A stretch of DNA of 64,000 nt, taken from sequence record MZ443771.1. One strand, 5' to 3'. The notes under the pieces were generated by a model, which saw only the letters and a program-made list of their open reading frames with translations, was not told where the DNA came from and searched no databases. The stretch's first letter is position 1; every line of letters starts with the position of its first letter. A program made the position numbers and the translations under genes. This document shows, in pieces, positions 7,188-59,472 of this stretch.

Positions 7188-7243
7188 TCTGCAAATAACT
7201 GGTCAAAATAGCTCTTTATACGCACACGCGCCCGTGATACAAT
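7188..7243 (+). promoter_or_regulatory. Repeated phage promoter (CTGGWCAAAAT box + extended -10)
   Basis: TCTGCAAATAACTGGTCAAAAT-28nt-TACAAT with TG at extended -10. Confidence 0.75.
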
Positions 7244-7296
7244 ATATGCAGACGCTACACAACGTAGCACATACAACTAATGCTGAGGAGCATACA

Positions 7297-7623
7297 ATGA
7301 AAACTTACAACGCTGAGAACAAACACGAAATCGAAGAATTTGCGGCTGAGATCAACAAACGCATGAAGCGTACCGATGCGAAAGCAATCGTAACCAACGC
7401 CTACGCAGACGACGAGTTTTGTTTGATGGTTGTTGAGTGGGACGCAGAACTAAATGAAGAAACTGGCGAGTGTGGTTACTTCATTGATATCCCGAGCGAA
7501 GACGGCGAAAAGCATCGCATCACCTATGCAGGTGTGCCGCACCCAGAAGATAAAGAGTACGTGTTCTACTTCGACATGTACGAAGAATTGATGCCTGAGA
7601 TTGAACGTCTGAATCTCGCCTAA
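7297..7623 (+). CDS. Acidic hypothetical protein
   Basis: SD GAGGAG before ATG 7297. Confidence 0.8.
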   Translation: MKTYNAENKHEIEEFAAEINKRMKRTDAKAIVTNAYADDEFCLMVVEWDAELNEETGECGYFIDIPSEDGEKHRITYAGVPHPEDKEYVFYFDMYEELMPEIERLNLA

Positions 7624-7676
7624 GCAAATATCTGGTCAAAAGCGCCGTTGCTTGAAGACGTGTGACGGCGTATTAT
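7624..7676 (+). promoter_or_regulatory. Repeated phage promoter
   Basis: GCAAATATCTGGTCAAAAG-28nt-TATTAT; TTGCTT 17 nt upstream of -10. Confidence 0.7.
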
Positions 7677-7725
7677 GTAATCTCTAGCGCAATGACGCGC
7701 TCAACACTGAAAGAGGCAACAAACA

Positions 7726-7971
7726 ATGGCTGAGAAACAAATCGCACTTGACCTGATCGCAGACGTAGCATCGCCAACTGAAATCGTATTTGAAGACGGC
7801 GAGACTTCTACTGAATGGCTTGCGCCTTACGATCTGCGCCTGACTGTGCTGAATGCCAGTGGCCCGAACGGCTACCCCGAAGTGAACATCATCGGCGAAG
7901 AAGATAATCTGCGCCGCTTCTTGGCAGAAAAGCTGCCTGACGTTGACGACTTAGTTGAAGACGTTAACTGA
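7726..7971 (+). CDS. Small acidic hypothetical protein
   Basis: SD GAGG; followed by hairpin 7989-8006. Confidence 0.75.
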   Translation: MAEKQIALDLIADVASPTEIVFEDGETSTEWLAPYDLRLTVLNASGPNGYPEVNIIGEEDNLRRFLAEKLPDVDDLVEDVN

Positions 7972-10790: not shown

Positions 10791-11364
10791 CATTGATATC
10801 ACGCCCGTATCGAAAGACGAAGACTGGGGCTCATTGAGTCCCTTTCATCTCGGGCCGTGTCGCACACCTGATGGTACGATGTTTCTCAACATGGAGAACT
10901 TGTGGCAGTACAGCAAGGTCTATGAAGACCACATCGTCAACTCGAACGATATCTTTCACGGGGAGATAAGCAGGGAGTGGTACGAGTGGCATCTCAAAGG
11001 TGCTGGTTCAAAACAGGCGCATCGCTATCCTATGGGGAAAGGTCAAAAGGCTTTGTTCTCCAAATGGGGCGACTTGCGCCTTTCTTACGTTTCAGCACGA
11101 AAACAAATCTACGTGCCGGAATATGCCAAGCTGGTAATCAATCAGCCGAAGTTCAAACGTCTGCTCAAGGAATATAAGAAAGGTGCGAAGATCGTTGTAC
11201 GCGATTATGACACCTACGATATTCTACGCGCCTACCAAGATGCTCGTAGTCCTTGGCTAGAAGCGATCAACAACCCGAACGCGAAGTTTGGTCACTCATT
11301 TGTGATTGCCCTCGCCCTGCTGTTTCACGACAGACCACTATGGTACAATCAATGGATAATCTAA
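10729..11364 (+). CDS. NADAR/DUF6939-like protein
   Basis: LSPFHLGP...MENLWQYSKVY...HRYP...ARKQIYVPEY...DYD; resembles the NADAR E-x-x-[FW]-Q-x-x-K motif. Confidence 0.45.
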   Translation: MIQLGTITALSLKDKAPRSTDIDITPVSKDEDWGSLSPFHLGPCRTPDGTMFLNMENLWQYSKVYEDHIVNSNDIFHGEISREWYEWHLKGAGSKQAHRYPMGKGQKALFSKWGDLRLSYVSARKQIYVPEYAKLVINQPKFKRLLKEYKKGAKIVVRDYDTYDILRAYQDARSPWLEAINNPNAKFGHSFVIALALLFHDRPLWYNQWII

Positions 11365-11669
11365 AGTATCTGGCTTGCATTGAACTGAGCACAAGGGAAG
11401 GTAATCTGAATCTCCCTATCCTGCCTAAGTGTGATATGCAGGCGTTTCTGCTTGACAGCCGTACTAAAACGAAAGTGCCCATAAAGCTCAATGCCACAAA
11501 CGTGGTGAAAGTCTGCGGCAAGACGTGTGGCAGCCTACAATGGTTCGACTGCGTTAATCTGCTTATCTGGTCGTCGTTCGAGCCAGAGCGTTTCACGCTG
11601 TATATTGAGCGGACACTCAAAGCAGACGAGACAGCAAGCGCCCTGCAATCTGCTGAACTCTGCAAATAA
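11352..11669 (+). CDS. Hypothetical protein
   Basis: Overlapping ATG in operon. Confidence 0.65.
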   Translation: MDNLKYLACIELSTREGNLNLPILPKCDMQAFLLDSRTKTKVPIKLNATNVVKVCGKTCGSLQWFDCVNLLIWSSFEPERFTLYIERTLKADETASALQSAELCK

Positions 11670-11714
11670 CTGGTCAAAATAGCCGTTCTATTTAGTAGCT
11701 CGATATGATATACT
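11659..11714 (+). promoter_or_regulatory. Repeated phage promoter
   Basis: First 25 nt identical to 7188-7212; box-28nt-TATACT with extended TG. Confidence 0.75.
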
Positions 11715-11762: not shown

Positions 11763-12203
11763 ATGACTACTACTTACAACATCGCTGATCTGAAAACCCC
11801 TGAAATGTTCGCAGATGCCCGCCTGGGTCACTTGTCAGATTTTGCTGATAAACTTCGCGCTCTGCTGGGTCGTGAAGATATGTATCTGGAACTTGAAGCA
11901 GAAGAGGGCGCTGATATTTCCGATGTGTGCCCTGATGCAGATTCTGTTGTGGGTGACAATCTGATCAACCTGCACATTCATTATGCAGATGACCCTGATC
12001 ATGTAAGCGATAAGGGTGCATGGTACGCTTACTTAGCTTTCCCTCATGTTGAAAATCACTGGGGCGAGTGGACAAATAGTTTCATCCTGTTTGTCGAATC
12101 TAACGACGGGGATTTCCTTGAAGAGATCGCGTTCGAAAATGGCAACCCGAAAATGCTGTCTGATATTGTCGACCGCATTAACTACTGGTTCCCTGCCGAG
12201 TAA
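11763..12203 (+). CDS. Acidic hypothetical protein
   Basis: SD GAGGAG. Confidence 0.8.
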   Translation: MTTTYNIADLKTPEMFADARLGHLSDFADKLRALLGREDMYLELEAEEGADISDVCPDADSVVGDNLINLHIHYADDPDHVSDKGAWYAYLAFPHVENHWGEWTNSFILFVESNDGDFLEEIAFENGNPKMLSDIVDRINYWFPAE

Positions 12204-17146: not shown

Positions 17147-17548
17147 ATGGATAAAACGTACATGCGACATTGGGGATCACGCTACGTGCGGTCCTCATCT
17201 GGCAAGTGGTATTCAGTTCATGGACGTGAAGGAACGTGGGTGACGAATCGCTACGGCACATCATTCTATCGTAGCGGTTCAGAAGTGTGGCGCGACATAT
17301 CTGCCGCAGATCGTAATGCGTTGGAACGAGAGTTAGTTTCCCGTACACGCAAAGACTTCAAAGACACTAAGCTCAAGTATAACCACTGGGGCAAGATTGT
17401 CCTGACTATTGCGAGACAGTCAGAAGAAGAAAACAACCCACACACGTCAGAGCTAGCTGAGATGCTTGAGTCGCTGAGACAGACTTTCTACGGACAGAAG
17501 GTACAGCAACTAAGCACAATATTGGACGAAATAGGGCTTAAAGAGTAG
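17147..17548 (+). CDS. Hypothetical protein
   Basis: Co-oriented ORF in operon. Confidence 0.7.
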   Translation: MDKTYMRHWGSRYVRSSSGKWYSVHGREGTWVTNRYGTSFYRSGSEVWRDISAADRNALERELVSRTRKDFKDTKLKYNHWGKIVLTIARQSEEENNPHTSELAEMLESLRQTFYGQKVQQLSTILDEIGLKE

Positions 17549-17615
17549 GCTCGTTTGTGCTATAATAGAGATGAACGCTAGACACTCGTTTAGCTACTTA
17601 CATGAGGATATGTAT

Positions 17616-19070
17616 ATGAAAAAGATTAAATACACTTTTCGCCTGACTGACCTTGTTCGCATCTCCAAAACTCTGCCTGTAACTATGAAGCATTTCGATG
17701 GTGCAGGAGAAGAAGCCATTGTTGTTGGTCGTCAGAATGAAAAAGACGAGTACGCGTTACACATCAAACATCATGGTTATGTTGCATGGTACCCAGCCGA
17801 GTGCTTGACGCTGATCTCTCACAATAACGGTGAGCTGCTTGATCAGTGGGAAGCAGGTGACTACGGTCGCGATAAGAAGAAGAAACGCAAGATGCCAGAG
17901 GCGCTGCGTAACTTCACTGCTATTCTGCCTGTCACCTGCAACGCTGATTGCTCGTTTTGCCCAGAGAAAGAGATGGAGCAGAAAGCTGCCCAGCAAGAAT
18001 GGCAAGACGGTTTGATTGCTTCGATCAAACGCATGTACAAGAAAACGAAGTTCGACCACGTATCAATCTCTGGTGGCGAACCTACACTGCGCACGAAGTT
18101 CTTGTTTGAGACTATCGACCGCATTCAGAAAGAAACGCCAATCAAGAAAGTAGGCTTGACGTCTAACGGCTTCTTCCTTGAAAAGCAAAACAGCACGTTC
18201 GACTTCTTAGACCGTAACACTACGCCTGAGATGACGAGCAAGCTGTCGCATCTGAATATCAGTATGCACTCGTTCAATCGTGATCTCGCAAACAAGATCA
18301 TGGGCGTGAACTACAAACAGACTCTGGAAGATCTTGTGCGCTTCCGCCGTCAGCTTGGTCGTGAAGTTAGTTTCCACATTAACTTTGTGATCAACGACAA
18401 GACCGGCTCAATCACCGAAGAGTTCAAACGTGCCGCCAACTTCATGCGAGCGAACCCGTTCATCGACATTGTGTTCCGTGTTGACTACAACGATGTTGAA
18501 CTGTCCAAAGCACTGCGCAAATATGCTATGGATTATGCAGAGTGGGAAGAAGAAAGTCGCATCGCCGCTGCTGCTCGTAAGAAATGTAGAATGAAGGAGC
18601 CGAAAGCACCTCACATCGTTCAGAAGTTTGATCGTTTCTTTGGAGGCAGCACTAACGATGAAGCTGAGAGTGCATGGACTACAGGCTGCCCATCATGCTT
18701 CACCCATGCGTCTAACATCGTCAATAACAGTCGCGCATTCTTGAAAGCGTCTTCATACGAACCGAACGACGACGAAGAAGAATACACTGAGCTGGTCTAT
18801 CACATGGACGGCGCTCTGTATTGGGACTGGACTCGTAATGACCCTGTACCAGAACCACGCAGCAAACGTTTCGACTTCGAAATGAAAGAAGAAACTGTCA
18901 CTCAACCAAAAGCTGTTAAGAAACCTAAGAAGGCCAAACCTGTTGCTATGACCAGCAAGCAGAAGAAAGAAGTTGAGCGTGAGTCTGGTGTTGATAGCTG
19001 CAACTATTCATCTCGCTGTGGTTTTGTTGGCGGTAACGGTCGCTGTGGCTTCGGCAGCGGTCTGTGCTAA
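17616..19070 (+). CDS. Radical SAM protein with N-terminal beta-domain and C-terminal Cys/Gly tail
   Basis: CNADCSFC (CxxxCxxC), SISGGEPT, LTSNG, LNISMHS, GCPSC. Confidence 0.88.
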   Translation: MKKIKYTFRLTDLVRISKTLPVTMKHFDGAGEEAIVVGRQNEKDEYALHIKHHGYVAWYPAECLTLISHNNGELLDQWEAGDYGRDKKKKRKMPEALRNFTAILPVTCNADCSFCPEKEMEQKAAQQEWQDGLIASIKRMYKKTKFDHVSISGGEPTLRTKFLFETIDRIQKETPIKKVGLTSNGFFLEKQNSTFDFLDRNTTPEMTSKLSHLNISMHSFNRDLANKIMGVNYKQTLEDLVRFRRQLGREVSFHINFVINDKTGSITEEFKRAANFMRANPFIDIVFRVDYNDVELSKALRKYAMDYAEWEEESRIAAAARKKCRMKEPKAPHIVQKFDRFFGGSTNDEAESAWTTGCPSCFTHASNIVNNSRAFLKASSYEPNDDEEEYTELVYHMDGALYWDWTRNDPVPEPRSKRFDFEMKEETVTQPKAVKKPKKAKPVAMTSKQKKEVERESGVDSCNYSSRCGFVGGNGRCGFGSGLC

Positions 19071-20579: not shown

Positions 20580-20843
20580 ATGGCTGTAGGCTTTGTCAAA
20601 GATGATGGCGTCAACGATACCATCGAAACAAACGTGCTGAATGAGATCGACCGCGCTCGTTCAGAACTTCAAGGCGCAGGTTCTGATTACTGCGTCAACC
20701 CTGATTGCGGTGAGAAGATTCCTGTGATGCGTAAACTCGCTATGCCCAATGCGCGTTACTGCATCAACTGTCAGGCAGCGCACGACGGCACTGCTAACGT
20801 CGGCTATAATCGCCGTGGCTCAAAAGATTCTCAACTGAGGTAG
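20580..20843 (+). CDS. ybiI: DksA/TraR-family C4 zinc finger protein, YbiI-like
   Basis: C..PDCGEKIP..R..AMP.ARYCINCQ and terminal GYNRRGSKDSQLR as in enterobacterial YbiI. Confidence 0.9.
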   Translation: MAVGFVKDDGVNDTIETNVLNEIDRARSELQGAGSDYCVNPDCGEKIPVMRKLAMPNARYCINCQAAHDGTANVGYNRRGSKDSQLR

Positions 20844-41539: not shown

Positions 41540-41733
41540 CAGCGAGACATGTTCTCTCTGTTATGTGCCTATAACGTTTTGACCGTGTGTTTATCTTTTC
41601 CCGGGCACACGGTCCTTTTTAAAGTCGCTTCGATGAGGCTGCTTTAAAAAGGGTTCAATACCCTTTGAGCGCACCGGGCTTTACGCGGTTTCCGCCTTGT
41701 GTGCTCTCATGCTAAACCGCAAAGGAAATAGAT
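41540..41733 (+). ncRNA. Structured ~195-nt 5' leader or ncRNA with candidate pseudoknot
   Basis: Stems 41581-89/41606-14, 41616-24/41642-50, 41667-74/41699-706, and loop 41685-91 complementary to 41714-20. Confidence 0.55.
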
Positions 41734-42546
41734 ATGCCAAACTTACGTGCTAAACCAGAAGACAAATTCTCTAAAGCTCGTTCTGCGAAGAACTCACCTG
41801 AACGTCAGGCTGCTGCTGAGAAGAAACGCACAACCCCACGCGGTCCGTCTTCTGCTAAACCTCGTCAGTTGCCGCCGGGCTATGGCTATAAGTCAAAAGC
41901 TACAGGCGAACGTGCGCCAGAGCGTGACGATAAAGAGTCCCAGAAACCTGATTTGAGTAAGAAAGACTGGGTTGCTCGTCGTGACGCAACGCCGAAGATG
42001 CGTGATGAAGAACGTGTATTCAATCTCGTTCACGCAATTCTGGCTGCATGGAAAGCGGATATCGGACACGCCGAACATACGGCAGCATCTTCTGGTATCA
42101 TCAAAGTGTCTCGTCGTAAAGTTGAAGGCGCATTGCGCGATCTCAAGAATACGCGCTTCACTAAAATCCCAACGCTCATCAATGAAATTCTGACACACTC
42201 TGATGTGTGTGAGGAATTCGGGATGTGGGTGTACGTCGAGCACGACACGCCGGATTGGATCTTCGTGCGTCTGCCTGAAGACAGCACGCCTGTGCTTCGC
42301 GCTGATATCGTCTACGACCGCACAGGTCAAACTGCTACGACGATCACGACTTCGAGTGAACCGCTGCTTGAAGTCTTAGGGGAAGACGACGAGCCAGAAA
42401 TGCTCGAATGCAATGAGCGCGATATTGAAGACCTTGAAACTAAGGCAATGCGCAAAGAGCTGATCGACAAGGGCATCATCAAGCCAGAAGCTGCTGATAA
42501 GCTGAGTCGACCGGATCTGATGAAGCTGTTAGCGTACTACGCATAA
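41734..42546 (+). CDS. Protein with basic disordered N-terminus and C-terminal HeH-like module
   Basis: K/R/P-rich first ~90 aa; IEDLETKAMRKELIDKGII...KLSRPDLMKLL; SD AAGGA. Confidence 0.8.
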   Translation: MPNLRAKPEDKFSKARSAKNSPERQAAAEKKRTTPRGPSSAKPRQLPPGYGYKSKATGERAPERDDKESQKPDLSKKDWVARRDATPKMRDEERVFNLVHAILAAWKADIGHAEHTAASSGIIKVSRRKVEGALRDLKNTRFTKIPTLINEILTHSDVCEEFGMWVYVEHDTPDWIFVRLPEDSTPVLRADIVYDRTGQTATTITTSSEPLLEVLGEDDEPEMLECNERDIEDLETKAMRKELIDKGIIKPEAADKLSRPDLMKLLAYYA

Positions 42547-42555
42547 GCAATAACG

Positions 42556-42585
42556 AGCAGGGCGCTGAAATATAGCTGCCCTGCT
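42556..42585 (+). terminator. Terminator-like hairpin
   Basis: AGCAGGGC...GCCCTGCT; weak T tract. Confidence 0.55.
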
Positions 42586-42596
42586 ATCTGCGAAGT

Positions 42597-42652
42597 ATGC
42601 AGAAAACTGGACAAAATCGTGGTTGTTATCTGACAGCCACCTATGCTACAAT
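42597..42652 (+). promoter_or_regulatory. Repeated phage promoter
   Basis: AAAACTGGACAAAAT-29nt-TACAAT; TACAATATATGCAGACGC identical to the 7238 copy. Confidence 0.78.
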
Positions 42653-42712
42653 ATATGCAGACGCAGTGAGCGTCGAAATCAAACTAAACAACAATACTGA
42701 GGAGTATTTATC

Positions 42713-44314: not shown

Positions 44315-44395
44315 TCTCGCTGTAAACTGAACGACTGTGCGGTTCAAATCGAGCCGCACATTTATTGACAACTAAGCTGATTGAGGAATCACACT

Positions 44396-45634
44396 ATGTC
44401 AAACGCAAACAAAAATCTGCTGAATGCCCGTGTTCGTCGTCTGGACGGTACTACCACTTACATCAACAAAGTGAACGCTAACGGTTATAGCACCGACGCG
44501 AAGGGCCCTCAAATCCCTGTGAAACGCATCGTGCTCGCGGGCAAAACGCTGAAAGAGATTGAAGCGCCCTACGCGAAAACTGAGCACGTTCTGATTGACG
44601 GCATCACTGTGAAGCTGAACAAGCGCCAGCAAAAAGATCTGCGCAACGATGAAATCGACGTTGACACGATCAAGCCTGATTTTAGTTCTCTGGTGTACAT
44701 CGACCCGGAAACAGGCAAGCCTGCTGTAGCGAAAGCTACGAAGCCGAAAGGCGGTGTGAAAGCGACGCGCGAGCGCAACAAAGACACGCGCTCTAAGAAA
44801 GAGCGTAAAGCAGAAGCAGACGCGTCGAGTGCTGACCTCGATATGATCCCACGCTCTGATGCGATTGACCGCAAAGCAGAGCTGGTGCAAATGATCGACG
44901 CGACAATCGCCGACGCAACGACGAAAGATCGTCGCAAGATGTTGAGCGAAGCGTTTGACATGGACTGGAAAGATGTTAAGCATCACGGTGGCAAGGGTGT
45001 TGTCAAGCACATGGGACGCAAGGCAGCACAACGCGCCTGTGATAAGCTGCGCGTAGCAACTACCAGCGATGCGTATATTAAGCAGATGCCCATCGAGCTT
45101 AAACGTCTTATTCAAGACGGTAAGCTGACGCTCAACAAGAAACAGATTGAGCGTGTGTTAGACGTGTTTGGGCTTGATATGCAGTTCTATGCAACTGCGA
45201 TGCAGACGCTGCTGGGTAATCTCAAGCTGTCGCTCGATAAATCTATCGAGAACCCGAAAGTGAAAGAGAAGAAAGCGAAACACAAACTCGCTGTGCCGAC
45301 CTACGCGTCTGAGAAAGAACAGACCAAGCGTGTGCGCAAGATGACTGTAAAACTCATCAAGCCGCCGAAGTCTGCAATGGCAGAGGCGAAAGCGCACATC
45401 AAAGAGTCGAAAGCGACTATCGCCAAGAAGCTGGGCATCAAGCCTGCTGACGTGAAGCGTGGTCTGCTGTGTTATAAACCGAACGGCGTTGAGCTGATGT
45501 TCGTAGCTTGCGACATGACCGGCCCTGTCTTCGTTGAGAAAGACGGTAGCGAGTGCGTAATGTCACACGCGAACGTGAAGCACACTTTCAACCTGACGCT
45601 GGGCACTAACTCTGAACTGGACGCGGCTGTATGA
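44396..45634 (+). CDS. Basic protein, partial paralogue of 42713-44314
   Basis: SD GAGGA; N-terminal 50 aa align ungapped with the upstream gene (14 identities by eye). Confidence 0.85.
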   Translation: MSNANKNLLNARVRRLDGTTTYINKVNANGYSTDAKGPQIPVKRIVLAGKTLKEIEAPYAKTEHVLIDGITVKLNKRQQKDLRNDEIDVDTIKPDFSSLVYIDPETGKPAVAKATKPKGGVKATRERNKDTRSKKERKAEADASSADLDMIPRSDAIDRKAELVQMIDATIADATTKDRRKMLSEAFDMDWKDVKHHGGKGVVKHMGRKAAQRACDKLRVATTSDAYIKQMPIELKRLIQDGKLTLNKKQIERVLDVFGLDMQFYATAMQTLLGNLKLSLDKSIENPKVKEKKAKHKLAVPTYASEKEQTKRVRKMTVKLIKPPKSAMAEAKAHIKESKATIAKKLGIKPADVKRGLLCYKPNGVELMFVACDMTGPVFVEKDGSECVMSHANVKHTFNLTLGTNSELDAAV

Positions 45635-46014
45635 CGAACAACGAGATTATCCTGACAGGTGTATTTGCTCAATTGTACTCGCGGCTGACTACAGCCGCTG
45701 TACTTGAAACGTATGTGTACTATTCTGATTTGGCCCCTGTAGTGTTTGGTGTGCAACTGTCCACCGTGAGCAATTCGCAGTACAACGCCTTGTGGGAACT
45801 CGTTGCGAAAACAATGCGCGTCGATATCGCAGCGGGCAGACCACCGCTTGCTGCGTTGTACGTGTCTCGCGCAACTGACGAGAAGACACCGAGCAAAAAG
45901 TTCTTCAAAGAATACTACAAACTCACGGGCGTACATCTGTCTGAGACAGACTGGCGAGCACTCGTTGAACATGTGTGGAAATCTTATGCACCAGATCTTC
46001 GGGAGCCATCATGA
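45631..46014 (+). CDS. Hypothetical protein (possible winged-helix)
   Basis: YSDLA...GRPPLAALYVSR..P.KKFF pattern; ATGA overlap. Confidence 0.6.
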   Translation: MTNNEIILTGVFAQLYSRLTTAAVLETYVYYSDLAPVVFGVQLSTVSNSQYNALWELVAKTMRVDIAAGRPPLAALYVSRATDEKTPSKKFFKEYYKLTGVHLSETDWRALVEHVWKSYAPDLREPS

Positions 46015-46472
46015 AAAAGGCCAAAGTTGTAATTAGTCGCGGTGGCTATAGACCGTCATCGCAAGAAGAATCTCAAAAGCTGGTCGCTGAGTTTCTTCTC
46101 GGTAATATCGGAATCAACCCTACTGTTATCAGCCAGCAAATGTTGCTCAACATTGCGAACTATAACTACCTGACGTCTATCGTAGACACGGGCAAAGCTA
46201 CGCAAGCGAACCAGAGCACATTGCATAAAACTGTAAAAGAACTTAATGCGTTCTGTAGATCGCACAAAATTCCTCTGGGTTTGCTAATTATGCCCCATAC
46301 TTCGACCAGCGATTATGCCGGTGATGAGGTGGTAGCGATTCCTTGGGAGCATGTGCGCTCGAACACATTGAGCCAGTCGGCCATCGAATCTCTGTTTGAA
46401 ACAGTTGAAGCTGATGGTTACCCGCAGTTTGTGACTGATGCGAAGACAGTAGAGGGATACAATGTTTTATGA
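46011..46472 (+). CDS. Hypothetical protein
   Basis: SD GGGAG; ATGA overlap. Confidence 0.7.
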   Translation: MKKAKVVISRGGYRPSSQEESQKLVAEFLLGNIGINPTVISQQMLLNIANYNYLTSIVDTGKATQANQSTLHKTVKELNAFCRSHKIPLGLLIMPHTSTSDYAGDEVVAIPWEHVRSNTLSQSAIESLFETVEADGYPQFVTDAKTVEGYNVL

Positions 46473-47742
46473 TCACGTATTCAACCACGACGAGAAGCAA
46501 TTGCTTTTGAAGGTGGCTGAGTCTAAATATCTGGTGCGGCTAGACTGCCCCGACTATTTGAAGAAGTCGAAACACGCGATTGAGATCAGACATACTGTGA
46601 CCAACCGTGGCGAGCAACGTCGAAGCGGTACGATAACAACCGCATTCGTACCGCGCATTCATTCTGCGACTGTGCAGCGACTGGTACGTGAAGTGCGAGA
46701 CAGCCAAAGCAAAAGCGCGTCTGAGGGACTCGCTGCGTTATTCGAGTTAGGCCTGGGTGTGCCGAAGCAACGTGATATCGCAACGTACCTGCGCGACTAC
46801 TCGCGTGAGAACGATAAGAAGGGTGTGGGTATCAAGTATATCCGCAAACTGATTAATGAGTATCACCGCAAGCACCGTCATAGTTTTGCTGGCAGTCGCT
46901 GGTTGATGCCCGCTGCGTATACAGCGAACATGCTCAACATGCAGTCGTTCATTCATCTGAAAGAGAACGGTTACTCGAAGAAAGTCAAAGTACCTGACGG
47001 CGTTCCTGTGATCTTCATCTATCAGAACACGAACCACGAGAATGCAACGTACAGCATGTGTGACGCATTCGTGATTAGCCCGCTCGGTTACCCGATGCCG
47101 TTCGCTCAAATCGCGTTGCGCCCTGAGTTCAAAGCTGCGCCGAAAGAGTTCAGCTCGAAAGCGTTTCGTGGTAAGAGCATGTACGCTATGGTAATGGGTG
47201 TGCTGCACTGGGAGAAGGGCGATGCGCTCGATAACTTCCGTGAGCTGGTGGAGATTGACGACGAGCCGTATCTGACGTTGCTTAGTGATGAACGTTATGC
47301 TGATCGTCGTTCGCCTGAGTATCAAGCTCTACTGGACGAACGTGCTGCGATGAATGCGAAGCGCCAGAAGTGGAGTGACGTGATTGCGAAGTATGGCAAC
47401 ACGACACGCACACTCAAGCCAGAACAGGCTGAGCGTCTGGCAAAAGCCGAAGCGTTCTTCATTAAGCGCAAAGAGTTCTTGGACGCTTTCGACAAGTTCG
47501 AAAAGAAAGAGAACAGCAAAGCCGCCCGTAAGTTTGCTGCCGCATCTGCATCGTTCGCTGCTGTTGATTGTGGTGTTGTGATTGACCGAACAACGTATCG
47601 CTCTGTGTCGTCAGGCTTGGATGTTGTGAACAAGATTCTCACTCGCTGGGGATTCACGACAATCAACACTGTCGATAGTAGTCAGAAGAAATCCATTTTA
47701 ACCTATGACCTGAAAAATGCAAGTCGCATTTGGTCTCTGTAA
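46462..47742 (+). CDS. Basic hypothetical protein
   Basis: 426-aa ORF. Confidence 0.8.
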   Translation: MFYDHVFNHDEKQLLLKVAESKYLVRLDCPDYLKKSKHAIEIRHTVTNRGEQRRSGTITTAFVPRIHSATVQRLVREVRDSQSKSASEGLAALFELGLGVPKQRDIATYLRDYSRENDKKGVGIKYIRKLINEYHRKHRHSFAGSRWLMPAAYTANMLNMQSFIHLKENGYSKKVKVPDGVPVIFIYQNTNHENATYSMCDAFVISPLGYPMPFAQIALRPEFKAAPKEFSSKAFRGKSMYAMVMGVLHWEKGDALDNFRELVEIDDEPYLTLLSDERYADRRSPEYQALLDERAAMNAKRQKWSDVIAKYGNTTRTLKPEQAERLAKAEAFFIKRKEFLDAFDKFEKKENSKAARKFAAASASFAAVDCGVVIDRTTYRSVSSGLDVVNKILTRWGFTTINTVDSSQKKSILTYDLKNASRIWSL

Positions 47743-47768
47743 ACAACTTATCTGAGGAGATAACGCAC

Positions 47769-50700
47769 ATGTCTAATAACAATCTGGGTGGCGCTGCTGC
47801 TTTTGGCTCTGAGACACAAAAGCATCTGTCCGAACAACAACGCCGCGCTTCATCGTCTGAAAGCGGTCACGTAAACAAATGCACAATCGTTGTGCTGACC
47901 TCGCTTAATGCTCATAATCGTTTCTCGTGGATGACGGCAGACGAGCAACTGAAAGAAAAGCAGATCGAAGGTAAAGTGCTCGACCGTTTGCCAAAACTGA
48001 TCGAACGTGCGACTGGCCCGTCTACTGACACGAACAGCGCGTACTTCATTTTGCACCCAAACAACGGTGTGCCTACTCGCATTGACGAGCGTATCAAAGT
48101 CGGCGAAGGCGATGCAGTAATCGTTTCATATACTGTAAACAAAGCAGTGTCTGAAATGCACGGTAGTTTATCGCTTGCTCTGTTTAGCGCGGGTGAAACT
48201 GACCTGGCTGATCTGGCATCTGAGTATGGCATCCACACCATCTCGATTGTCGAAGAAAGCAAAGCTGGTCCGTTCATCAAAGCGCTCGCCGCACAGGTGG
48301 AAGCTCTGCAAACTGTAAATATCAGTAGCATTGACGAAACTGATGGTGCGTTCGAAAAAGCGGTAATTGACTACAGCGTTCTGCCGGGTAACCCTGTAAC
48401 TGTACTGACCGGCGCTGTGCGTACCTTCATCATGCAAACTATTAGTGGCGAAGTCTTCGCTGCAATCCCCAATAACGGAGAACTGAACGTGAAACAACCT
48501 ACCACTGCACCGATTGTCGACCTGAGCGAAGACTTCGACGAAGGTGATGAAATCATCGACCAGAACGAAGGCGACAATGACGGTGAAGCTACCGGTACTG
48601 ATCTGCTGGGCTACAAAGCAGAAACTCTGACTATCGAACAGATGGTCGAAGCGCTCGAAGCGCTGGAGTACGATGTGTCTGCGATGAGCGAAGAAGGTAT
48701 TCGTGAATCGTTCCTCACTGAGCAGGAACTCTGGTTGAGCAACAACGATCAGTCTGCCACTGACGACGAAGAAGAAGAAGACGGTGAAGAAGTTGACGGC
48801 GATGCCGAAGACGAAGAAGCCGAAGAGGACAGCGAAGAAGAAGAGTTTGACGCTGTGCAATTCCTCGCTTCTGTGCTGGTTGCCGAAGAACTGGATCGTG
48901 ACGGCCTGAAAGTTCTGATTCGTACTCAAGACCTGAAGGTCATGAAGTCTGACACCGTCGAAACTCTGACCGCCAAACTGCTTGAGCTGGTCGAAGGCGC
49001 TACCGAAGAAGAGATGGTAGAAACGCTGAACACCTTCGTAGCTGCTCTGCAAGAGCGTGGCATCGACTGTCCAAACATGCTGGCCGCTCTGTCTTCTGAT
49101 GAAGAAGACGAAGAAGAAGAAGTTGACGGCGAATCCGAAGAAGAGGAAGAAGAAGATTCTTCCGAAAGCGCGGACGAAGAAGAAGACGAAGACGACATTC
49201 AGGCGCAAATCGACGCTGTGACTGATCCTCTCGACTACTTCGCTTTCGCCGGCGGTATGCTTGACGCTGAACAGCGTTCTGCCGCAGTTGCTGCGATGGG
49301 CGAAGACACCACGAACATGACCATTGTTCAGGTGATGAAAGCGTTCACCCGTATTCAAAGCCAGACCAATACTCTGGACATTGAAGCCGAAGCGCATGAC
49401 GAAGACGCAGAAGACGCGTCAAACGTTGACACTCTGACTGAACTGCTGGGTCAGTATGACGAAGACACCGTTGAGCACGTAGCTGGCGCTCTGGGTATCG
49501 ACACTGCTGGTTGCGAAAATGTAGACGAAGTAATTGCAGCAATCGCAGACGGCGGTAGCGAAGAAGACTTCGCAGTAATCGAAGCGCTGGCAACCGACCT
49601 GGGTGTTGACCTGTCAGAAGTTGCTGACGGCGATCAGCTGGATTATGTTGACGCTGTGCTCGCTGTGCTGCCGGTGTACTTCGAAGACTCAGACGAAGAC
49701 GACACCGAGCAGGAAGAAGAGTCCGACGAAGAAGTTGAAGACGAAGGCGATAACGAACACGAGCAAGCTGCCGAAGGCGATGACGCTAACGATAGCATGA
49801 AGTTCGTCACTGACGTTGACACCGAAAACTCTGTCGGCCCGATGCTGTCTGTCGATATGGACCAGACGCTGATCATCAACTACACCCTGACCGACGGTGA
49901 CACCTACTCTGCAATCGAAAGCGAGCTGGCTGATATCGAAGGTGTTAACTACCGCTTCCCGTTCAACCTGGGTAAAGCCGGTAAAGCGCAGGGCTCTATG
50001 CACCTGCCAGCGCAGTCTCTGCTGGAAATCTGCGAGCGTGTTAAAACAACTCGTTTCCTCGCTGACCCGCGTTCGTTCGATGTTGCTGTGTGGTCTAGCA
50101 GTCTTGAGCAAACTCTGGAGCAGGAAATCCGTGCTGCGCTGTATGCCGGTCGTATCGAAGAAGGTATGGACCCAAGCGAAGCGGGCATCGTAGTTGGTGA
50201 CTTCATCGACGACGAAGAAATGCGCGAAGCGATGGAACTCGGTCACATTGACCCGTCGCAGTACGACGAACTGCAGGGTGAGCGTCTGCCGATTGAAAGC
50301 CTGTATAGCGCACGTACTCGCGTTCGCCCAGTTCAGGTTGACACTGCACACGTTGCACTGCACACCACCGTGCTGAACATTGCGCTGCCGGGCTTCTGGG
50401 GTGATCAGTCTGTTGCACGTATGATGCAGGGCGCAGTTAACCGCGTCATCGCTCAGGCGCAGTCTACCGAAGGCATCAAAGTGTACGCTGGCTTCACTAT
50501 GGAATCTGCTGCACTGGTCAACAACGACCGCCTGTTTGAAGCGCTGGAAACTCTGCGTAGCTTCGACGGTGTTCAGTCTTACTCTGCCGCTGATGCTGCA
50601 AACTTCGACGACGCCGAAGACGTTATCGAAGTAGCGTCTGCACTGGACACCCGCGACCTGCCGCTGTCTGTGCTGTCTGGTGGCCTGGCCGCTGCAACGT

Positions 50701-52473: not shown

Positions 52474-53265
52474 ATGGCTAAAGCAACCGCAAATACCGCA
52501 GCAATCGTTCTGGCTAAAATGCTGGGCGTAGTTATCGAAAGCGCCGATGCGAAAGAAATCGCAGCAATTCTGAAAGAAGCCGGTCTGACTGTCTCTGGCG
52601 GTAAAGTGGTAAAAGCTGAAAAAGGCGGTAAAGCTGCTAAAGGCAAAAAGGCTAAAGCGCCTACCGTTGCTGAAATCGTCGCTGCTGTTAAAGACGAAGA
52701 AGAACTGGACATCTCCGGCGTTGACGAAGATACTCTGCGCGAAGCAGTGATCAAAGCCAAGCTGTCTACCAAGAAAAAGGCAGGCGCGCTGGACGAAGAT
52801 GAACTGCGCGAACTGCTGAACGACAACCTGGGCGGCGAGTCCGAAGAGGACGAAGACGACGAAGAAGAAGAAGAGGACGAGGACGAAGACGACTCGGACG
52901 ACGAAGATGAAGACGGCGACGACGACGAAGACGAAGACGACGACTCTGATGATGAAGAAGAGGACGAAGACGACGAAGACGGCGACGACGAAGAAGAGGA
53001 CGAAGACGACGAGGACGAAGATGAAGACGAGGACGAAGATGATGAAGACGCCCTCGACCTCGACGACCTCGACAAGAAAGAGCTGTTAGCTCTGGTCCTG
53101 GAACACAAGCTCGCGCCGAAGAAAAAGGCGTCTAAGATGGACGAAGACGAACTGCGCGAACTGTGCGAATCTCACTTCGGCGGTGACGACGAAGAAGACG
53201 ACGAAGACGAAGATGAAGACGACGAAGACTTCGACGACGAAGACGAAGACGAAGACGACGAGTAA
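52474..53265 (+). CDS. Protein with basic N-terminus, two HeH-like modules and ~70-residue D/E tract
   Basis: SD AGGA; DEDTLREAVIKAKL...LDEDELRELL and LDKKELLALVLEHKLAPKKKASKMDEDELRELCESHFGG. Confidence 0.88.
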   Translation: MAKATANTAAIVLAKMLGVVIESADAKEIAAILKEAGLTVSGGKVVKAEKGGKAAKGKKAKAPTVAEIVAAVKDEEELDISGVDEDTLREAVIKAKLSTKKKAGALDEDELRELLNDNLGGESEEDEDDEEEEEDEDEDDSDDEDEDGDDDEDEDDDSDDEEEDEDDEDGDDEEEDEDDEDEDEDEDEDDEDALDLDDLDKKELLALVLEHKLAPKKKASKMDEDELRELCESHFGGDDEEDDEDEDEDDEDFDDEDEDEDDE

Positions 53266-55330: not shown

Positions 55331-55386
55331 TCTGCAAATAGTTGGACAGAATGCGGGTATATAAGAATAGTCTTATGTGATATAAT
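55331..55386 (+). promoter_or_regulatory. Repeated phage promoter upstream of gyrB
   Basis: TCTGCAAATAGTTGGACAGAAT-28nt-TATAAT with extended TG. Confidence 0.75.
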
Positions 55387-55460: not shown

Positions 55461-57491
55461 ATGGCCAAAGCGCCTAAAGCCGTTAAGGTTAAAAAGAAAA
55501 CGGGAGATGGGTCCGAACAAGAAGGATTCATGATCGCAGAAGGTCTTGATGGTATAAGACTGAATCCCGGGATGTACATGGGGGAGCGCGGTCCCGATAT
55601 GGCTTACCGTGCTGTCAAAGAACCTGTAGATAACGATTACGACGAATACATCGCAGGTCGAAACAAACTTATCGAAGTAGTCATTGATTACGATAACGAC
55701 CTGAACGTTGTCGCAGATATGGCGAAAGGTATTCCTACCGACTTCAAGAAATTGAAAGATGGTTCGAAAGAAACGATCATGACCGCAGCGTTTAGCCGTG
55801 CTCACGCTGGTGGCAAGTTCGATGATAAAGCATATAAGACCTCTGCCGGTACTCACGGTGTAGGCGTTGCAGCACTGAACGCAATCTCAAGTCGCCTGCG
55901 TGTGTGGTCAATGTACAAAGGCGGTTGTGCGTATCAGATGTGGGAGTGCGGCGTTGCCAAATCTGGCAAAGACCCGAAACAAGTTAAAGCAGTAGACAAA
56001 GATGTTATGTCTCTGCTGCGTGAAAAGAAACACAACAAGTACGGTACGATTGTCGCGTGGACGCTCGACCAGACTGTCGTGTCTGCTGACGTGCAGCGTG
56101 GTAAGAAGCTGCCTAAGAACTATCGTCACGCTGCACCAGACCCAGCGCAACTTGGTTCGTGGCTGCGTAACATGTCTATGCTCAACCCTGGACTCGAAGT
56201 TCGCCTGACGTTGATCAAGAAAGGCAAGCGCAAAGAGTTCACTTTCATCAACAAGAAAGACCTTGTGCATGTCGTGAAGACGATGGTGGAAGAACGTGAG
56301 CTGGGTTCTGTTGGCAAGCCGTTCATCTTCAAAAACGACAACATCACTGCTGCGCTGACGTGGACAGATCACGCCGACACTGATAACTTCCTCAGTTTCG
56401 TTAACACAAGCCCTACAATTGACGGCGGGTGGCACGTTGTAGGTTTCCGTGATGCGCTGTTCGAAGCAATCAAACCTTTCATGAAAGAATCGAAAGGCAA
56501 AGGCAAGAAGAAGCAGAACTTCAAACAGGAAGATTTGCTTATCGGCCTGACTGGTATGTTCGACTGGCGTATGCACGGCGCTCAGTACACGTCACAGGTT
56601 AAAGACAAGCTGGCGAGCCGTGTTGAAAAAGAAGTATACGAGATGCTGAAAGATGCGTTCGTGAAATACTTCAAGGACAATAAGAAAGTCGCAACGACGA
56701 TCATCAAACGTGCCGAAGCGATGAACAAAGGCCGCGAAGAATTGTCCGCTGTTGTTAAGTCTATGGCAGACACGAAGAAGAAGCTGAAGGGCAACGCACT
56801 CCCTGCTGACCTGATATCTGCGCTCAAGTGTAAGCCCCACGAACGTGAGCTTATCGTTGTAGAAGGTGACTCTGCTGGTGGTACTGCGAAACACGCACGT
56901 AACCCTGACCATCAGGAAGTTATGCTCGCTGGTGGTAAACCGCTCAACGGTCTGAAAGCAAGTCTGGCTGATGTGCTCAAACACAAAGAAGTTCAAGGCA
57001 TGTTGGTATCTGTTGGTGCAGACCTGAAATCGTTAGACCCGAAAGCAGAAGCGCCGAAACTGAGTACGAAGAATCTGCGTATCGGTAACCTACTGTTCCT
57101 GATGGATGCTGACCCAGACGGCTTCCACATCGCAACGTTGTTCCTGGGTGTTATCTATCGTCTGCTGCCTGACCTGATGAAAGAAGGGCGTGTGTGGATT
57201 GTCGATGCTCCTCTGTATAACGTGATGCACAAAGGCATTCACTATGGCGGTATGTCATTTGACGAATGCCGCGCGAAAGCGCCTGCTGCTGTAAAAGATA
57301 AAGAAATCGTTCGTGCAAAAGGTTGGGGTGAAGTCGAACCTGATGTGCTCGAAGCGATTGCATTTAATCCGAAGACTCGCCGCTTGATTCGTGTGAACCC
57401 ATTCACTAGCGTTGAGCAAGAGCGCTTCTTCCGTGGTGTGCTGGCAGAAGATGCAGTCCATCGTCGTCGTCTGCTGGGTCTGGAGGAATAA
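55461..57491 (+). CDS. gyrB: Type IIA topoisomerase B subunit (GyrB/ParE-like)
   Basis: EPVDN..DE, HAGGKFD..YKTSAGTHGVG, EGDSAGG, MDADPDG..I. Confidence 0.95.
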   Translation: MAKAPKAVKVKKKTGDGSEQEGFMIAEGLDGIRLNPGMYMGERGPDMAYRAVKEPVDNDYDEYIAGRNKLIEVVIDYDNDLNVVADMAKGIPTDFKKLKDGSKETIMTAAFSRAHAGGKFDDKAYKTSAGTHGVGVAALNAISSRLRVWSMYKGGCAYQMWECGVAKSGKDPKQVKAVDKDVMSLLREKKHNKYGTIVAWTLDQTVVSADVQRGKKLPKNYRHAAPDPAQLGSWLRNMSMLNPGLEVRLTLIKKGKRKEFTFINKKDLVHVVKTMVEERELGSVGKPFIFKNDNITAALTWTDHADTDNFLSFVNTSPTIDGGWHVVGFRDALFEAIKPFMKESKGKGKKKQNFKQEDLLIGLTGMFDWRMHGAQYTSQVKDKLASRVEKEVYEMLKDAFVKYFKDNKKVATTIIKRAEAMNKGREELSAVVKSMADTKKKLKGNALPADLISALKCKPHERELIVVEGDSAGGTAKHARNPDHQEVMLAGGKPLNGLKASLADVLKHKEVQGMLVSVGADLKSLDPKAEAPKLSTKNLRIGNLLFLMDADPDGFHIATLFLGVIYRLLPDLMKEGRVWIVDAPLYNVMHKGIHYGGMSFDECRAKAPAAVKDKEIVRAKGWGEVEPDVLEAIAFNPKTRRLIRVNPFTSVEQERFFRGVLAEDAVHRRRLLGLEE

Positions 57492-57492
57492 C

Positions 57493-57750
57493 ATGGACTT
57501 CAATCTTGGCTGCATGTCAGACGATACGCAGATTCGTTTTCTGGATATGCCTGTGCTCGAACACAAGCAGTTGACCGCCGAGCAGCATAAGCAGTACGGT
57601 GAACTTATGCCTAAGATTCGTGAGCTGTCAAAGCACTGCATCGTATCTGCGCATCGCGTAGTTGACGGCAAACCTGTGGAGCGTGTGCAACTGCAAATGT
57701 CACGTACAACTCTGGATAAGATTAACGCGATTGCCAAAGGGGAACTGTAA
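57493..57750 (+). CDS. Small hypothetical protein between topoisomerase subunits
   Basis: SD GGAGG; TAATG coupling to gyrA. Confidence 0.75.
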   Translation: MDFNLGCMSDDTQIRFLDMPVLEHKQLTAEQHKQYGELMPKIRELSKHCIVSAHRVVDGKPVERVQLQMSRTTLDKINAIAKGEL

Positions 57751-59399
57751 TGGCAGTTAAGCCGAAGAAAGTTAAAGTCGTGAAGAAAGCGACTGCGGTG
57801 GCGAAGCCTGCAAAGGTGAAGTTGAAATCGAAAGCTGTTGCTGTCGATGACATGCCGAAAAAGAAAAAGAAGAAAGGCGAAGTTGCTGTAGCCAGCACTG
57901 GTGCTTCATTGTACCCGATGCTTGGGCAAGACGAGTCTCTCATTCGTGACGAGAACCTCGCAGACTATACGCGTCGTGCTCTCTTCCAGTACGGTTCATA
58001 TGTTGTTGAAGACCGAGCGATTGCTGACTATCGTGACGGCCTCAAGCCTGTACACCGTGCGTTACTTTGGTCATTGTGTGACTTGGGCTTGCGTCCCGGA
58101 GGCGCATTCAAGAAGTCTGCGCGTACAGTGGGTGATGCGTTAGGTAAGTATCACCCACACGGTGACGCTGCTTGTTATGGTGCGATGGTCACTATTGCAA
58201 ACACAGTGCCTCCTGCTGTAGCTGGTCAAGGTAACTGGGGCGACCCTGTAGCACCTGCCGCGGCGATGCGTTACACAGAAGCGAAAATGAGTAAGTTTGC
58301 TGGTAGCTTCCTGCTGGACCCTGACTATCTTGAAGTAACGCCTATGGTGGACAACTTCTCAAACGATATGAAGATTCCACTGTATCTGCCAGCGCTGTTG
58401 CCGTACATGTTGTTTAACGGTAGTGTGCCTGCGCCAGCATACGGCGTTAAGTGTGGCAACCCTACATTCAGCTTCACGTCAGTCGCCAAAGTCGTTTGCG
58501 ATATGCTCAACGGCAAAGAGTATAGCGCGAAGAAACTCGCTGACACGCTCAAAGTCAACCACGAGTATGGTTGCTTGGACGTAAGCTCGGATGAAGACTT
58601 CCTCGCTCTCATGTCTACTGGTCGTGGTAAAGTAACCTACGAACCGCAGATGAAGATTGACGAGAAAGCGAAGACGATCACGATTCAGACCTACGTGCCG
58701 GGTGGAATGTCGAACAACTCCACCATCACTAAGAAGCTGGAGAAGATTGCCGAGTGGCCGGGCGTTGTATCTGCGTCTAACGCCAGTTCTAAAAAGAACA
58801 AAGATGCAGGTCCGTGGGGCGCAGCATTCGCCATCAAATGTCGTGGCAGCGAAGACCAGCTGTATGAACTCGCAACCAAGATTCAGCGTGAAGTAACATC
58901 TGCCATCAACTACTCGTTGGGTGTTACCGTTCGCCGTGCAGACGCATCGAACAAGTTTATGTACCTGTCGTATGTGAACTACTTCAAAGCGTGGGTTGCA
59001 TATCGCATCAAGCTGGAAACAGCGATGCTCAAAAACAAATTGGCCAAAGCAGAACGGCAGTTGTACCTCAATGAGGTATATTTGTGGGCTGTGGATAACA
59101 TGGACAAGTTGCTCAAAGCTCTGCCTAAAGTTCTTATGGCTAAAGACCCTGACGAAATGCTGGCGAAGATTTTCAAGATTAAACTTGAAAGCGCCAAGAT
59201 CATACTCGACCGTCAGGTTCGTAAGCTGGCAAGACTCGAACGCGCAGCATTAGCCCAAAAAGTTAAAGAGCTGAAGGCTGAGATTGCCGAATATAAAGGC
59301 GGTCTGAAAGAACCAGGCAAATACGCTGCTGCTGGTACTGCTGCAAAAGTTAAGGCTTATCTGAAATCACCAGACGATAAACTCCCTGTCGCTCTGTGA
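57750..59399 (+). CDS. gyrA: Type IIA topoisomerase A subunit (GyrA/ParC-like, no C-terminal pinwheel)
   Basis: DGLKPVHR, KSARTVG, YHPHGD, AAMRYTE; 549 aa. Confidence 0.95.
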   Translation: MAVKPKKVKVVKKATAVAKPAKVKLKSKAVAVDDMPKKKKKKGEVAVASTGASLYPMLGQDESLIRDENLADYTRRALFQYGSYVVEDRAIADYRDGLKPVHRALLWSLCDLGLRPGGAFKKSARTVGDALGKYHPHGDAACYGAMVTIANTVPPAVAGQGNWGDPVAPAAAMRYTEAKMSKFAGSFLLDPDYLEVTPMVDNFSNDMKIPLYLPALLPYMLFNGSVPAPAYGVKCGNPTFSFTSVAKVVCDMLNGKEYSAKKLADTLKVNHEYGCLDVSSDEDFLALMSTGRGKVTYEPQMKIDEKAKTITIQTYVPGGMSNNSTITKKLEKIAEWPGVVSASNASSKKNKDAGPWGAAFAIKCRGSEDQLYELATKIQREVTSAINYSLGVTVRRADASNKFMYLSYVNYFKAWVAYRIKLETAMLKNKLAKAERQLYLNEVYLWAVDNMDKLLKALPKVLMAKDPDEMLAKIFKIKLESAKIILDRQVRKLARLERAALAQKVKELKAEIAEYKGGLKEPGKYAAAGTAAKVKAYLKSPDDKLPVAL

Positions 59400-59420
59400 T
59401 AAATCTGTAAATACAACTCA

Positions 59421-59472
59421 GCAAATTCTTGGACGAAATGCGGTTGTATCAGAATAGTCTTAATGATATAAT
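59421..59472 (+). promoter_or_regulatory. Repeated phage promoter downstream of gyrA
   Basis: GCAAATTCTTGGACGAAAT-27nt-TATAAT; TTGTAT 17 nt upstream; near-identical to the 55331 copy. Confidence 0.75.

Follow-up and report, generated by a model that had tools for sequence, protein, structure and literature searches.

In phage T4, phage proteins re-tune the host RNA polymerase at the early promoters, with the injected ADP-ribosyltransferase Alt, and at the middle promoters, with MotA/AsiA. At the Pm promoter of phage Mu, the protein Mor binds a dyad centred at -43.5 and RNA polymerase's alpha subunit binds just upstream, on a partial UP element (PMC4390567). T4-like phages carry repeated PeSL (promoter-early stem-loop) cassettes, in which the stop codon of the preceding gene falls in an A/T-rich stretch and a Shine-Dalgarno sequence and start codon follow; they cluster among small orphan genes and serve as points of recombination (PMC2839356, PMC4122927). 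The 'hairy' jumbo myoviruses of the PaBG/Lu11/Y3/Yoloswag/AD1/JA11 group encode a sigma-70-like factor and no RNA polymerase (PMC7412058), and jumbo phages without a polymerase of their own rely on the host enzyme together with phage sigma factors (PMC13282480). Here we describe a family of promoters with a conserved upstream box in pEa_SNUABM_20 (pEa20), a jumbo phage of the genus Alexandravirus with Erwinia amylovora as its host (MZ443771.1, 265,871 bp), which was placed in the PaBG/Lu11/Y3/AD1 group. The stretch analysed, referred to as the window, comprises the final 64 kb of the record (64,000 nucleotides, genome 201872-265871), and positions are those of the window unless stated otherwise. 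Over the 7 kb at 41000-48000, the window showed 100% identity to pEa20. No polymerase domain was detected in the 18 largest proteins of pEa20. As phages of this group lack an RNA polymerase and rely on that of the host together with a phage sigma factor, host-recognised promoters are expected for their first genes.

By searching the window with the box pattern GCAAAWAWYTGGWCRRAAT, allowing at most three mismatches, we found 12 matches, all of them on the + strand, compared to 0.70 on average and at most 4 in 100 dinucleotide shuffles that served as the control. The shorter core CTGGWCAAAAT, with at most one mismatch, gave 10 matches against 2.4 expected, and its matches at 13577 and 34283 are not promoters. 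The distance from the C/T of YTGG in the box to the first base of the -10 hexamer was 39 nt at nine of the 12 sites, 40 nt at two and 38 nt at one. The hexamers were TATAAT (five sites), TACAAT (four), TATACT, TACACT and TATTAT, and all sites except the one at 7624 had the extended TG at -15/-14. A TGn in front of a TATAAT-like hexamer and the absence of a real -35, the best match to TTGACA at 16-18 nt averaging about 2.9 of 6 positions, are both as in sigma-70 promoters of the extended -10 type. It is well supported that the 12 sites form a single family (class A, or box promoters) of the sigma-70 extended -10 type, whose upstream element is sequence-specific and locked in position. They are the following:

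7191-7243, + strand: P1, box GCAAATAACTGGTCAAAAT at 7191-7209, TGaTACAAT with the hexamer at 7238-7243, predicted start around 7250; drives 7297-7623.
7624-7676, + strand: P2, box GCAAATATCTGGTCAAAAG, -10 TATTAT at 7671-7676, the sole copy without TG; drives 7726-7971.
11662-11714, + strand: P3, box overlapping the stop codon of gene 11352-11669, TGaTATACT; drives 11763-12203.
17514-17566, + strand: P4, box GCACAATATTGGACGAAAT, TGcTATAAT, situated in the 3' end of gene 17162-17548, spacer hairpin at 17534-17552; drives a radical-SAM gene at 17616-19070.
26357-26410, + strand: P5, box within the end of a UvsE-like gene (25397-26377), TGaTACACT at a spacing of 40; drives 26458-26760.
29778-29830, + strand: P6, box ACAAATAACTGGACAAACT, TGcTATAAT; drives 29898-30200.
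34806-34858, + strand: P7, variant core GCAAATAATAGGCTGAAAT, TGcTACAAT, spacer hairpin at 34828-34845; drives 34891-35595.
39219-39271, + strand: P8, box GCAAAAATCTGGACAAAAT, TGcTATAAT; drives 39323-39784.
41480-41532, + strand: P9, TGaTACAAT, TTGTCT at the -35 with a spacer of 17; drives 41734-42546.
42599-42652, + strand: P10, box GCAGAAAACTGGACAAAAT, TGcTACAAT at a spacing of 40; drives 42713-44314 (533-aa acidic protein), which ends at a terminator at 44336-44360.
55334-55386, + strand: P11, box GCAAATAGTTGGACAGAAT, TGaTATAAT; drives the topoisomerase II operon (55461-57491, 57750-59399).
59421-59472, + strand: P12, box GCAAATTCTTGGACGAAAT, TGaTATAAT at a spacing of 38; drives 59753-61027.

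A matrix that combined the box and the -10, and that was trained on the very 12 sites it recovers, returned only the same 12 sites when both strands of the whole 265,871-bp genome were scanned (39-57 bits, all other sequences below 14 bits). All of them fall within 7.2-59.5 kb of the window. Nearly every good non-coding extended -10 in the genome list of TGnTAYAAT-like sequences has a box, and generic sigma-70 scans of the region gave no more sites than were found in shuffles. The regulon occupies a 52-kb block that consists chiefly of small genes of unknown function and includes the topoisomerase operon. Eleven of the copies had been listed in an earlier note on this DNA; all were recovered, together with a twelfth that it had missed (17514-17532, GCACAATATTGGACGAAAT, with the -10 TGCTATAAT at 17558-17566). 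The gap of 27-29 nt that it gave between box and -10 held at all sites, as did the extended TG in 10 of its 11 copies, the copy at 7624 lacking it, and the inclusion of the topoisomerase operon, with its promoter at 55334, in one regulon. The claim of a sequence-specific box at a fixed position was borne out. The TTGTNT-like -35 elements it described are present in four copies only, plus TTGCTT at 7624, with a real -35 being essentially absent. The sites are also not strictly intergenic, as it had supposed, since in five of 12 (11662, 17514, 26357, 29778 and 34806) the upstream gene has its stop codon within the box or beyond it. The observation itself is real and stronger than first stated. 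Searching the literature with the box as a text string returned primers only, and no paper on the promoters of Alexandravirus, Y3 or AD1 was found.

We then compared syntenic stretches of 43-50 kb each from AD1 (Dickeya; Alexandravirus), Yoloswag (Erwinia), JA13 (Dickeya; Salmondvirus) and fHe-Yen9-02 (Yersinia), which were searched on both strands with a loose box pattern and a -10 test. Each relative had 8-12 box promoters on the + strand, compared to 0-2 per genome on the minus strand, which served as the control. Together, pEa20, Yoloswag, JA13 and fHe-Yen9-02 gave 40 promoters and AD1 a further 8, with the box 38-40 nt from the -10 throughout, so that the family spans four genera infecting Erwinia, Dickeya and Yersinia. 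Many of the promoters precede orthologous genes, namely those of the topoisomerase, the 533-aa acidic protein and the 100-aa, 153-aa, 270-aa and 424-aa proteins. Orthologs of P10 and P11 were found in all four genera and the ortholog of P5 in AD1 and Yoloswag, and the core variant of P7 is also kept in AD1. Between pEa20 and AD1 the -10 (93% identity) and the box (91%) are the best-kept parts, compared to the spacer (85%), the 40 nt downstream that correspond to the leader (75%) and the 8 nt upstream (67%). When viral contigs were scanned for the exact pattern, relatives of about 260 kb carried the complete motif, and elsewhere only chance-like matches in A/T-rich sequence appeared. Among the Pseudomonas relatives, a sample of 87 kb from Lu11 and PaBG yielded no box promoter. 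A G at box position 10 was demanded by one search pattern, and a looser pattern without that demand found the G nearly everywhere; the exceptions were two fHe-Yen9-02 promoters with the core CCGTCY, in which the G is shifted one position on. The alignment of pEa20 with AD1 breaks before P8, where AD1 has an extra gene, and resumes exactly at the box at 39218 (AD1 stretch 18164). This is one of several synteny breaks between the two phages, the others lying elsewhere than at a box, and hints at gene shuffling through cassettes, like that described for PeSLs.

The anatomy of the box was determined from the 40 promoters of four genera, with the -10 hexamer numbered -12 to -7. Two parts are invariant across the genera, GCAAAT at -59 to -54, with conservation reaching further upstream into a preceding AACTCT, and AAAAT at -45 to -41. 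The UP element consensus selected in vitro is -59 NNAAAWWTWTTTTNNAAAANNN -38, in which the A-tracts at -57 to -54 and -44 to -41 and the T-tract at -53 to -47 are best conserved (Estrem 1998, quoted in PMC5664571), and critical adenines lie at -41 to -43 (PMC4390567). The box has the same span, -59 to -41, as the UP element of rrnB P1 and the consensus, and its A-tracts coincide with the two most conserved tracts bound by the alpha subunit's C-terminal domain (alpha-CTD). The distal A-tract (-57 to -54) matched the UP consensus at 3.83 of 4 positions compared to a background of 1.28, and the proximal one (-44 to -41) at 2.90 of 4 compared to 1.02. The segment at -53 to -47 did not show the T-tract, with 2.62 of 7 matches against a background of 2.25. 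Unlike the A/T-rich UP element, which has no base-specific G/C positions of this sort, the phage box has conserved G/C positions at -59, -58, -51, -49, -48 and -46; it replaces the T-tract by a G/C-containing core and keeps G-59 and C-58. The parts common to all genera look like two alpha-CTD contact points and the segment between them does not.

This middle segment, the core, differs between the lineages. It reads CTGG(A/T)C in Alexandravirus, (Y)GGTC in Yoloswag, GTGTCC in JA13 and (S)YGGCT in fHe-Yen9-02, and its information content within a genome is about that of the -10. Identity at core positions 11-13 was 81% between non-orthologous promoters within a genome, compared to 46% between orthologous promoters of different genera, and none of 5000 shuffles of the genus labels inside ortholog groups reached the observed within-genus identity of the core. 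The A-tract flanks showed no such contrast (0.83 vs 0.86 and 0.81 vs 0.79 for paralogs and orthologs, respectively), nor did the spacer adjoining the box, where paralogs were 37% and orthologs 38% identical. Dickeya solani MK10 was the isolation host of both AD1, with the core CTGGAC, and JA13, with the core GTGTCC, and AD1 has the core of the Erwinia phages despite its Dickeya host. The core thus follows the lineage of the phage and not the host. This is the main argument for a phage-encoded reader of the core, which is our preferred, still tentative, reading; including the full mechanism set out below, we give it a probability of roughly 0.45. The earlier note had proposed either a phage factor or the alpha-CTD as the reader of the box. 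The data suggest both, at different parts of the box, the A-tracts and the core, and its interpretation is in this respect partly supported.

In many copies an inverted repeat lies in the spacer between box and -10, and the T-run behind it reaches as far as the TG. Over the 40 promoters, the spacers folded better than shuffled sequences (mean z -1.35, p 1e-4), 38% of them having a z below -1.5. Terminator-type hairpins with a T-run are found at 29797-29817, 17534-17552, 34828-34845, 39241-39264 and 42621-42642, the first of which lies between the box and the -10 of P6 and is followed by TTTTC (spacer free energy, dG, -12.2; z -4.3). The spacer of P2 has the inverted repeat CGCCGT...ACGGCG, that of P10 a 9-bp hairpin (z -5.2) and that of P8 an 8-bp hairpin, the last accompanied by a 10-bp 5' stem-loop at 39273-39296 (z -4.4 and -4.1). 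These spacer hairpins look like terminators of the preceding units that occupy the position of a -35, with one unit's terminator nested inside the promoter of the next. In the relatives the stems showed compensatory substitutions, such as GTTGT/ACAGC to GTTGC/GCGAC in the ortholog of P10. P1 has a separate terminator with a UUCG loop at 7098-7123, 70 nt upstream of its box. This strong terminator, GG(T)GGC/AGC-TTCG-GCTGCC with a T-run, occurs in eight near-identical copies in the genome, the other seven including those at 20159, 51748, 135033 and 147125. A second stem-loop of varying sequence is located just after the -10 (mean z -1.41, p 4e-8; z below -1.5 in 47%). It spans about +4 to +35, for example at 39273-39296, 42659-42673 and 7254-7268, and was seen at nearly every box promoter of pEa20 and the four other genomes. 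What is known about 5'-terminal stem-loops and RNase E makes it likely that it acts as a 5' stabiliser of the early transcripts.

Besides the box promoters, about 30 copies of a second motif, AAWCTGTAAATA (class B), were found throughout the genome in the orientation of the genes. In pEa20, genes 1-74 and 222-337 are mostly on the + strand and genes 75-221, virion genes among them, on the - strand, and class B is found in both of these blocks. It stands in front of virion genes, replication genes and the gene for an RpoD-like sigma factor, located at genome 199477-200514, 2.4 kb before window position 1 (phmmer E 5e-62 against PaBG gp118). Copies lie 30-60 nt before start codons; in the window, TGTAAATA is found at 3034, 9785, 27691, 48314, 52364, 52421 and 59406, and the class B motif AATCTGTAAATA at 59402-59413 stands directly before P12. 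The same motif is annotated as 'putative middle/late promoter', AACTGTAAAT, in the record of phage Lu11 (JQ768459). The Lu11 element equals class B and differs from the box promoters in being another promoter class, which is relevant to them only as their likely successor. The motif also resembles the T4 late promoter TATAAATA. Class B is probably read by the phage sigma factor, and its presence beside promoters of host type fits a switch from host-type to phage-type promoters. The -10 elements of the JA13 box promoters resemble the class B motif as well, and the two classes may have a common ancestry, or a common reader in the JA13 lineage.

It is reasonable to infer that the box promoters would be the early promoters of the phage. 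In the mechanism we propose, host RNA polymerase with sigma-70 would bind the near-consensus extended -10 (TGnTAYAAT), which would make a -35 hexamer dispensable, and the terminator hairpin of the preceding unit would often occupy its place. The composite element at about -59 to -41 would anchor the polymerase: the A-tracts GCAAAT and AAAAT sit where two alpha-CTDs bind in UP elements and would be contacted by them, and the core would stand in for the T-tract of a normal UP element. A DNA-binding protein encoded by the phage would then read the core, between or beside the alpha-CTDs. Such a reader could boost the promoters in a class I-like manner, or shut them once the phage sigma factor and the CTGTAAATA promoters take over. 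The transcripts would start a few bases before the short stem-loop, which probably protects the 5' end. The simplest transcription programme would run in three steps, in which host sigma-70 fires the 12 box promoters, the phage sigma factor subsequently serves the CTGTAAATA promoters, and the core reader tunes or shuts off the box promoters. More doubtful is an extension of the proposal to a private promoter code, in which a phage protein, possibly delivered with the DNA, would read a core of 5-6 bp in a split UP element alongside the alpha-CTDs and would coevolve with its 10-12 promoters. Coevolution of this kind would leave related phages of one bacterium with incompatible early promoters. 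If true, the private code would be an early-gene counterpart of T4 MotA/AsiA and would offer a new handle on the first wave of transcription in jumbo phages that lack a polymerase.

Several points weigh against a phage-encoded reader acting on host-recognised early promoters. Pfam and PHROGs scans revealed no DNA-binding family among 38 proteins, which comprised the first gene of each promoter, the conserved small early proteins and an AD1_047-like 'repressor'; the matches were limited to a radical SAM protein, a TraR/DksA zinc finger and PHROGs of unknown function. Gene conversion or recombination between repeated promoter cassettes, as proposed for PeSLs, could likewise make the core change in concert, with no lineage-specific reader being required. 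In JA13, most of the -10 elements are TAAACT-like, lack the TG and are preceded by CTG (for example at 24751, 28194 and 16724 of the JA13 stretch), and the JA13 box promoters may therefore by themselves not be strong host promoters. The sigma gene is preceded by a class B motif only (199437), with neither a box nor a good host-type promoter nearby, which leaves the order of the cascade not closed. The sequencing runs that contain the window are metagenomes. Four wastewater RNA libraries gave scattered, low-depth contigs over 39000-44900, some of them spanning promoters, and were uninformative on transcription starts as the contigs did not pile up at common begins or ends.

Recombination becomes part of the explanation if the whole box is an unusual UP element that is read by the host alpha-CTDs alone. 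The core would then matter for the shape or bendability of the DNA, or not at all, and would be kept the same within a genome by recombination or conversion of cassettes as in PeSLs. This agrees with the A-tracts at the UP-consensus positions, with the finding that an extended -10 and an UP element suffice for strong transcription (PMC4390567), with the recombination of PeSL cassettes via short homologies (PMC2839356) and with the AD1 breakpoint exactly at the start of a box at 39218. However, the neighbouring spacer is not homogenised, and gene conversion would therefore have to act on tracts of only about 20 bp; the information in the core, similar to that in the -10, implies selection on G/C bases that the alpha-CTD is not known to read, and two phages of one host strain keep different cores. 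We consider a host-only promoter rather unlikely, though it is the main rival to our preferred reading. The different cores of AD1 and JA13 on D. solani MK10 also speak against a host transcription factor or nucleoid protein whose site, like that of a class I activator at about -50 to -60, would be exploited by the phage. The box is fixed on one helix face relative to the -10, as such a site would be, and its left half, A-CTGGTC, resembles a FadR half-site, but it has no dyad symmetry and by eye matched none of the consensus sequences for IHF, Fis, CRP, the marbox or sigma-54, making a host factor improbable.

Equally improbable is that the box promoters are middle promoters, read by host core polymerase with the phage sigma factor, the box being a far-upstream contact of this factor or of a partner. 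The phage does encode an RpoD-like sigma, and the TAAACT-like -10 of the JA13 box promoters resembles class B CTGTAAATA. Against this, the -10 is that of a textbook host extended -10 promoter, and TGGWCA taken as a -35 would leave a gap of 32 nt compared to the 16-19 nt of sigma-70-family factors. Moreover, a match for the phage sigma already exists in class B, which occurs genome-wide and precedes structural genes, and the infection would be left with no other promoter of host type to begin from. Finally, the box could act in RNA at the 3' end of the upstream transcript, as a nut-like box with a hairpin or as the A-tract of a bidirectional terminator. A terminator-like hairpin with a T-run often follows the box directly, and AAAAT pairs with the T-run in one Yoloswag copy. 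We give this proposal scarcely any weight, as the distance from box to -10 is 39 +/- 1 regardless of the presence or size of a hairpin, only about 38% of the spacers fold significantly, and P1 has its own terminator apart from the box.

Compared to the described systems, the box promoters share with PeSLs the pairing of a repeated sigma-70 promoter, presumably early in pEa20, with a stem-loop terminator in regions of small genes, the spacer hairpin being present in about 38% of the phage copies and the upstream stop codon overlapping the box in five of 12. They differ in that PeSLs have a near-consensus -35 and -10 and an A/T-rich upstream region without a specific box, whereas these promoters have no -35, an extended -10 and a box of 19-25 bp at 39 nt. 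They also occur in the unrelated PaBG/Lu11-like group, have a lineage-specific core and a second stem-loop in the 5' leader, and a role in recombination rests here on the one breakpoint at 39218. Mu Pm is the nearest precedent for a phage protein and an alpha-CTD that share the upstream region of a promoter without a -35. As at Pm, no usable -35 is present, and the phage protein and the A-tract bound by the alpha-CTD would adjoin and stabilise each other. Unlike at Pm, the A-tract is proximal (-45 to -41) with the core upstream of it, there is no dyad, and the protein is hypothetical. Both T4 and pEa20 have phage-wide promoter classes with conserved positions beyond the -35 and -10, including upstream A-rich tracts. 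The T4 early promoters, however, keep a -35 (GTTTAC), and the MotA box is at -30 and not at -50. No protein resembling Alt, MotA or AsiA was identified in pEa20.

Other elements were considered for the box and rejected. TGGACA as a -35 would need a spacer of 32 nt or a -10 in the unconserved spacer. Compared by eye with the consensus sequences, IHF, Fis, CRP, LexA and the pho box did not fit, the marbox failed on a GCA-to-AAA spacing of 14 instead of 12, and of the FadR site only the left half-site CTGGTC agreed, half of the copies having GGAC. For sigma-54 (GG at -24 and GC at -12, 10 nt apart; TGGCAC-N5-TTGC), the TGG of the box has no conserved GC at the required distance, and the bases after AAAAT vary. 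A T4 MotA middle promoter has a TGCTT-type box at -30, a region that is unconserved here, the conserved box being at -59 to -41. A hairpin promoter as in phage N4, where a giant packaged polymerase reads a conserved short DNA hairpin upstream of the start, was rejected since the hairpins here differ in both sequence and size and most copies have none, and no polymerase domain was detected in the large proteins.

Most jumbo phages lack their own RNA polymerase, and the organisation of their transcription is almost unstudied. For one such phage, the box family provides a complete candidate set of host-recognised promoters, 12 with predicted starts, and the analysis yielded as a second result a genome-wide promoter class for the phage sigma factor. 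A phage reader, if there is one, would represent a new type of specificity factor for early promoters. Without such a reader, the family would still be a natural example of strong promoters that lack a -35 and embed a terminator, and promoter-terminator cassettes of the PeSL type would be shown outside the T4-like phages. Nearly all genes of pEa20 are annotated as 'hypothetical', and a regulatory map has practical value for annotation as these phages are used in biocontrol cocktails against fire blight.

Additionally, some features of the genes and leaders in the window were noted. The leaders of P9 (about 195 nt, 41539-41733) and P12 (about 274 nt, 59479-59752) are unusually long and contain only open reading frames of 21-32 codons, with no Rfam match; they could contain small RNAs, small proteins or regulatory structures. 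The whole window gave no match in Rfam and tRNA scans. The first genes behind P9 and P10 (41734-42546 and 42713-44314), as well as 52474-53265, encode proteins with long poly-acidic tracts and with C-terminal or repeated helix-extended-helix motifs of the SAP/Rho_N type (L..DELRE...LGL....K...L..LL). The N-terminal part of the 533-aa protein encoded by 42713-44314 is lysine-rich and histone-H1-like, and an Atlas search gave a weak SAP/Rho_N lead and nothing else for this protein.

The first gene after P4 (17616-19070) encodes a radical-SAM / 4Fe-4S protein (Pfam E 3e-13) with 82% identity to its Yersinia phage counterpart. An 87-aa protein with a TraR/DksA-type C4 zinc finger is encoded at 20580-20843 (Pfam E 5e-9) and is kept at 61-67% in Yoloswag, JA13 and fHe-Yen9-02. 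Proteins of the TraR/DksA type bind in the secondary channel of RNA polymerase, and this product may therefore help to re-tune host transcription. The 843-aa protein encoded at 28-2559 has its RecA domain in two stretches. Intein-splicing/Hint domains were found in the products of genome genes 4 (2487-5321) and 52 (32975-35104), the latter a C-5 cytosine methyltransferase, and inteins seem plentiful in pEa20.

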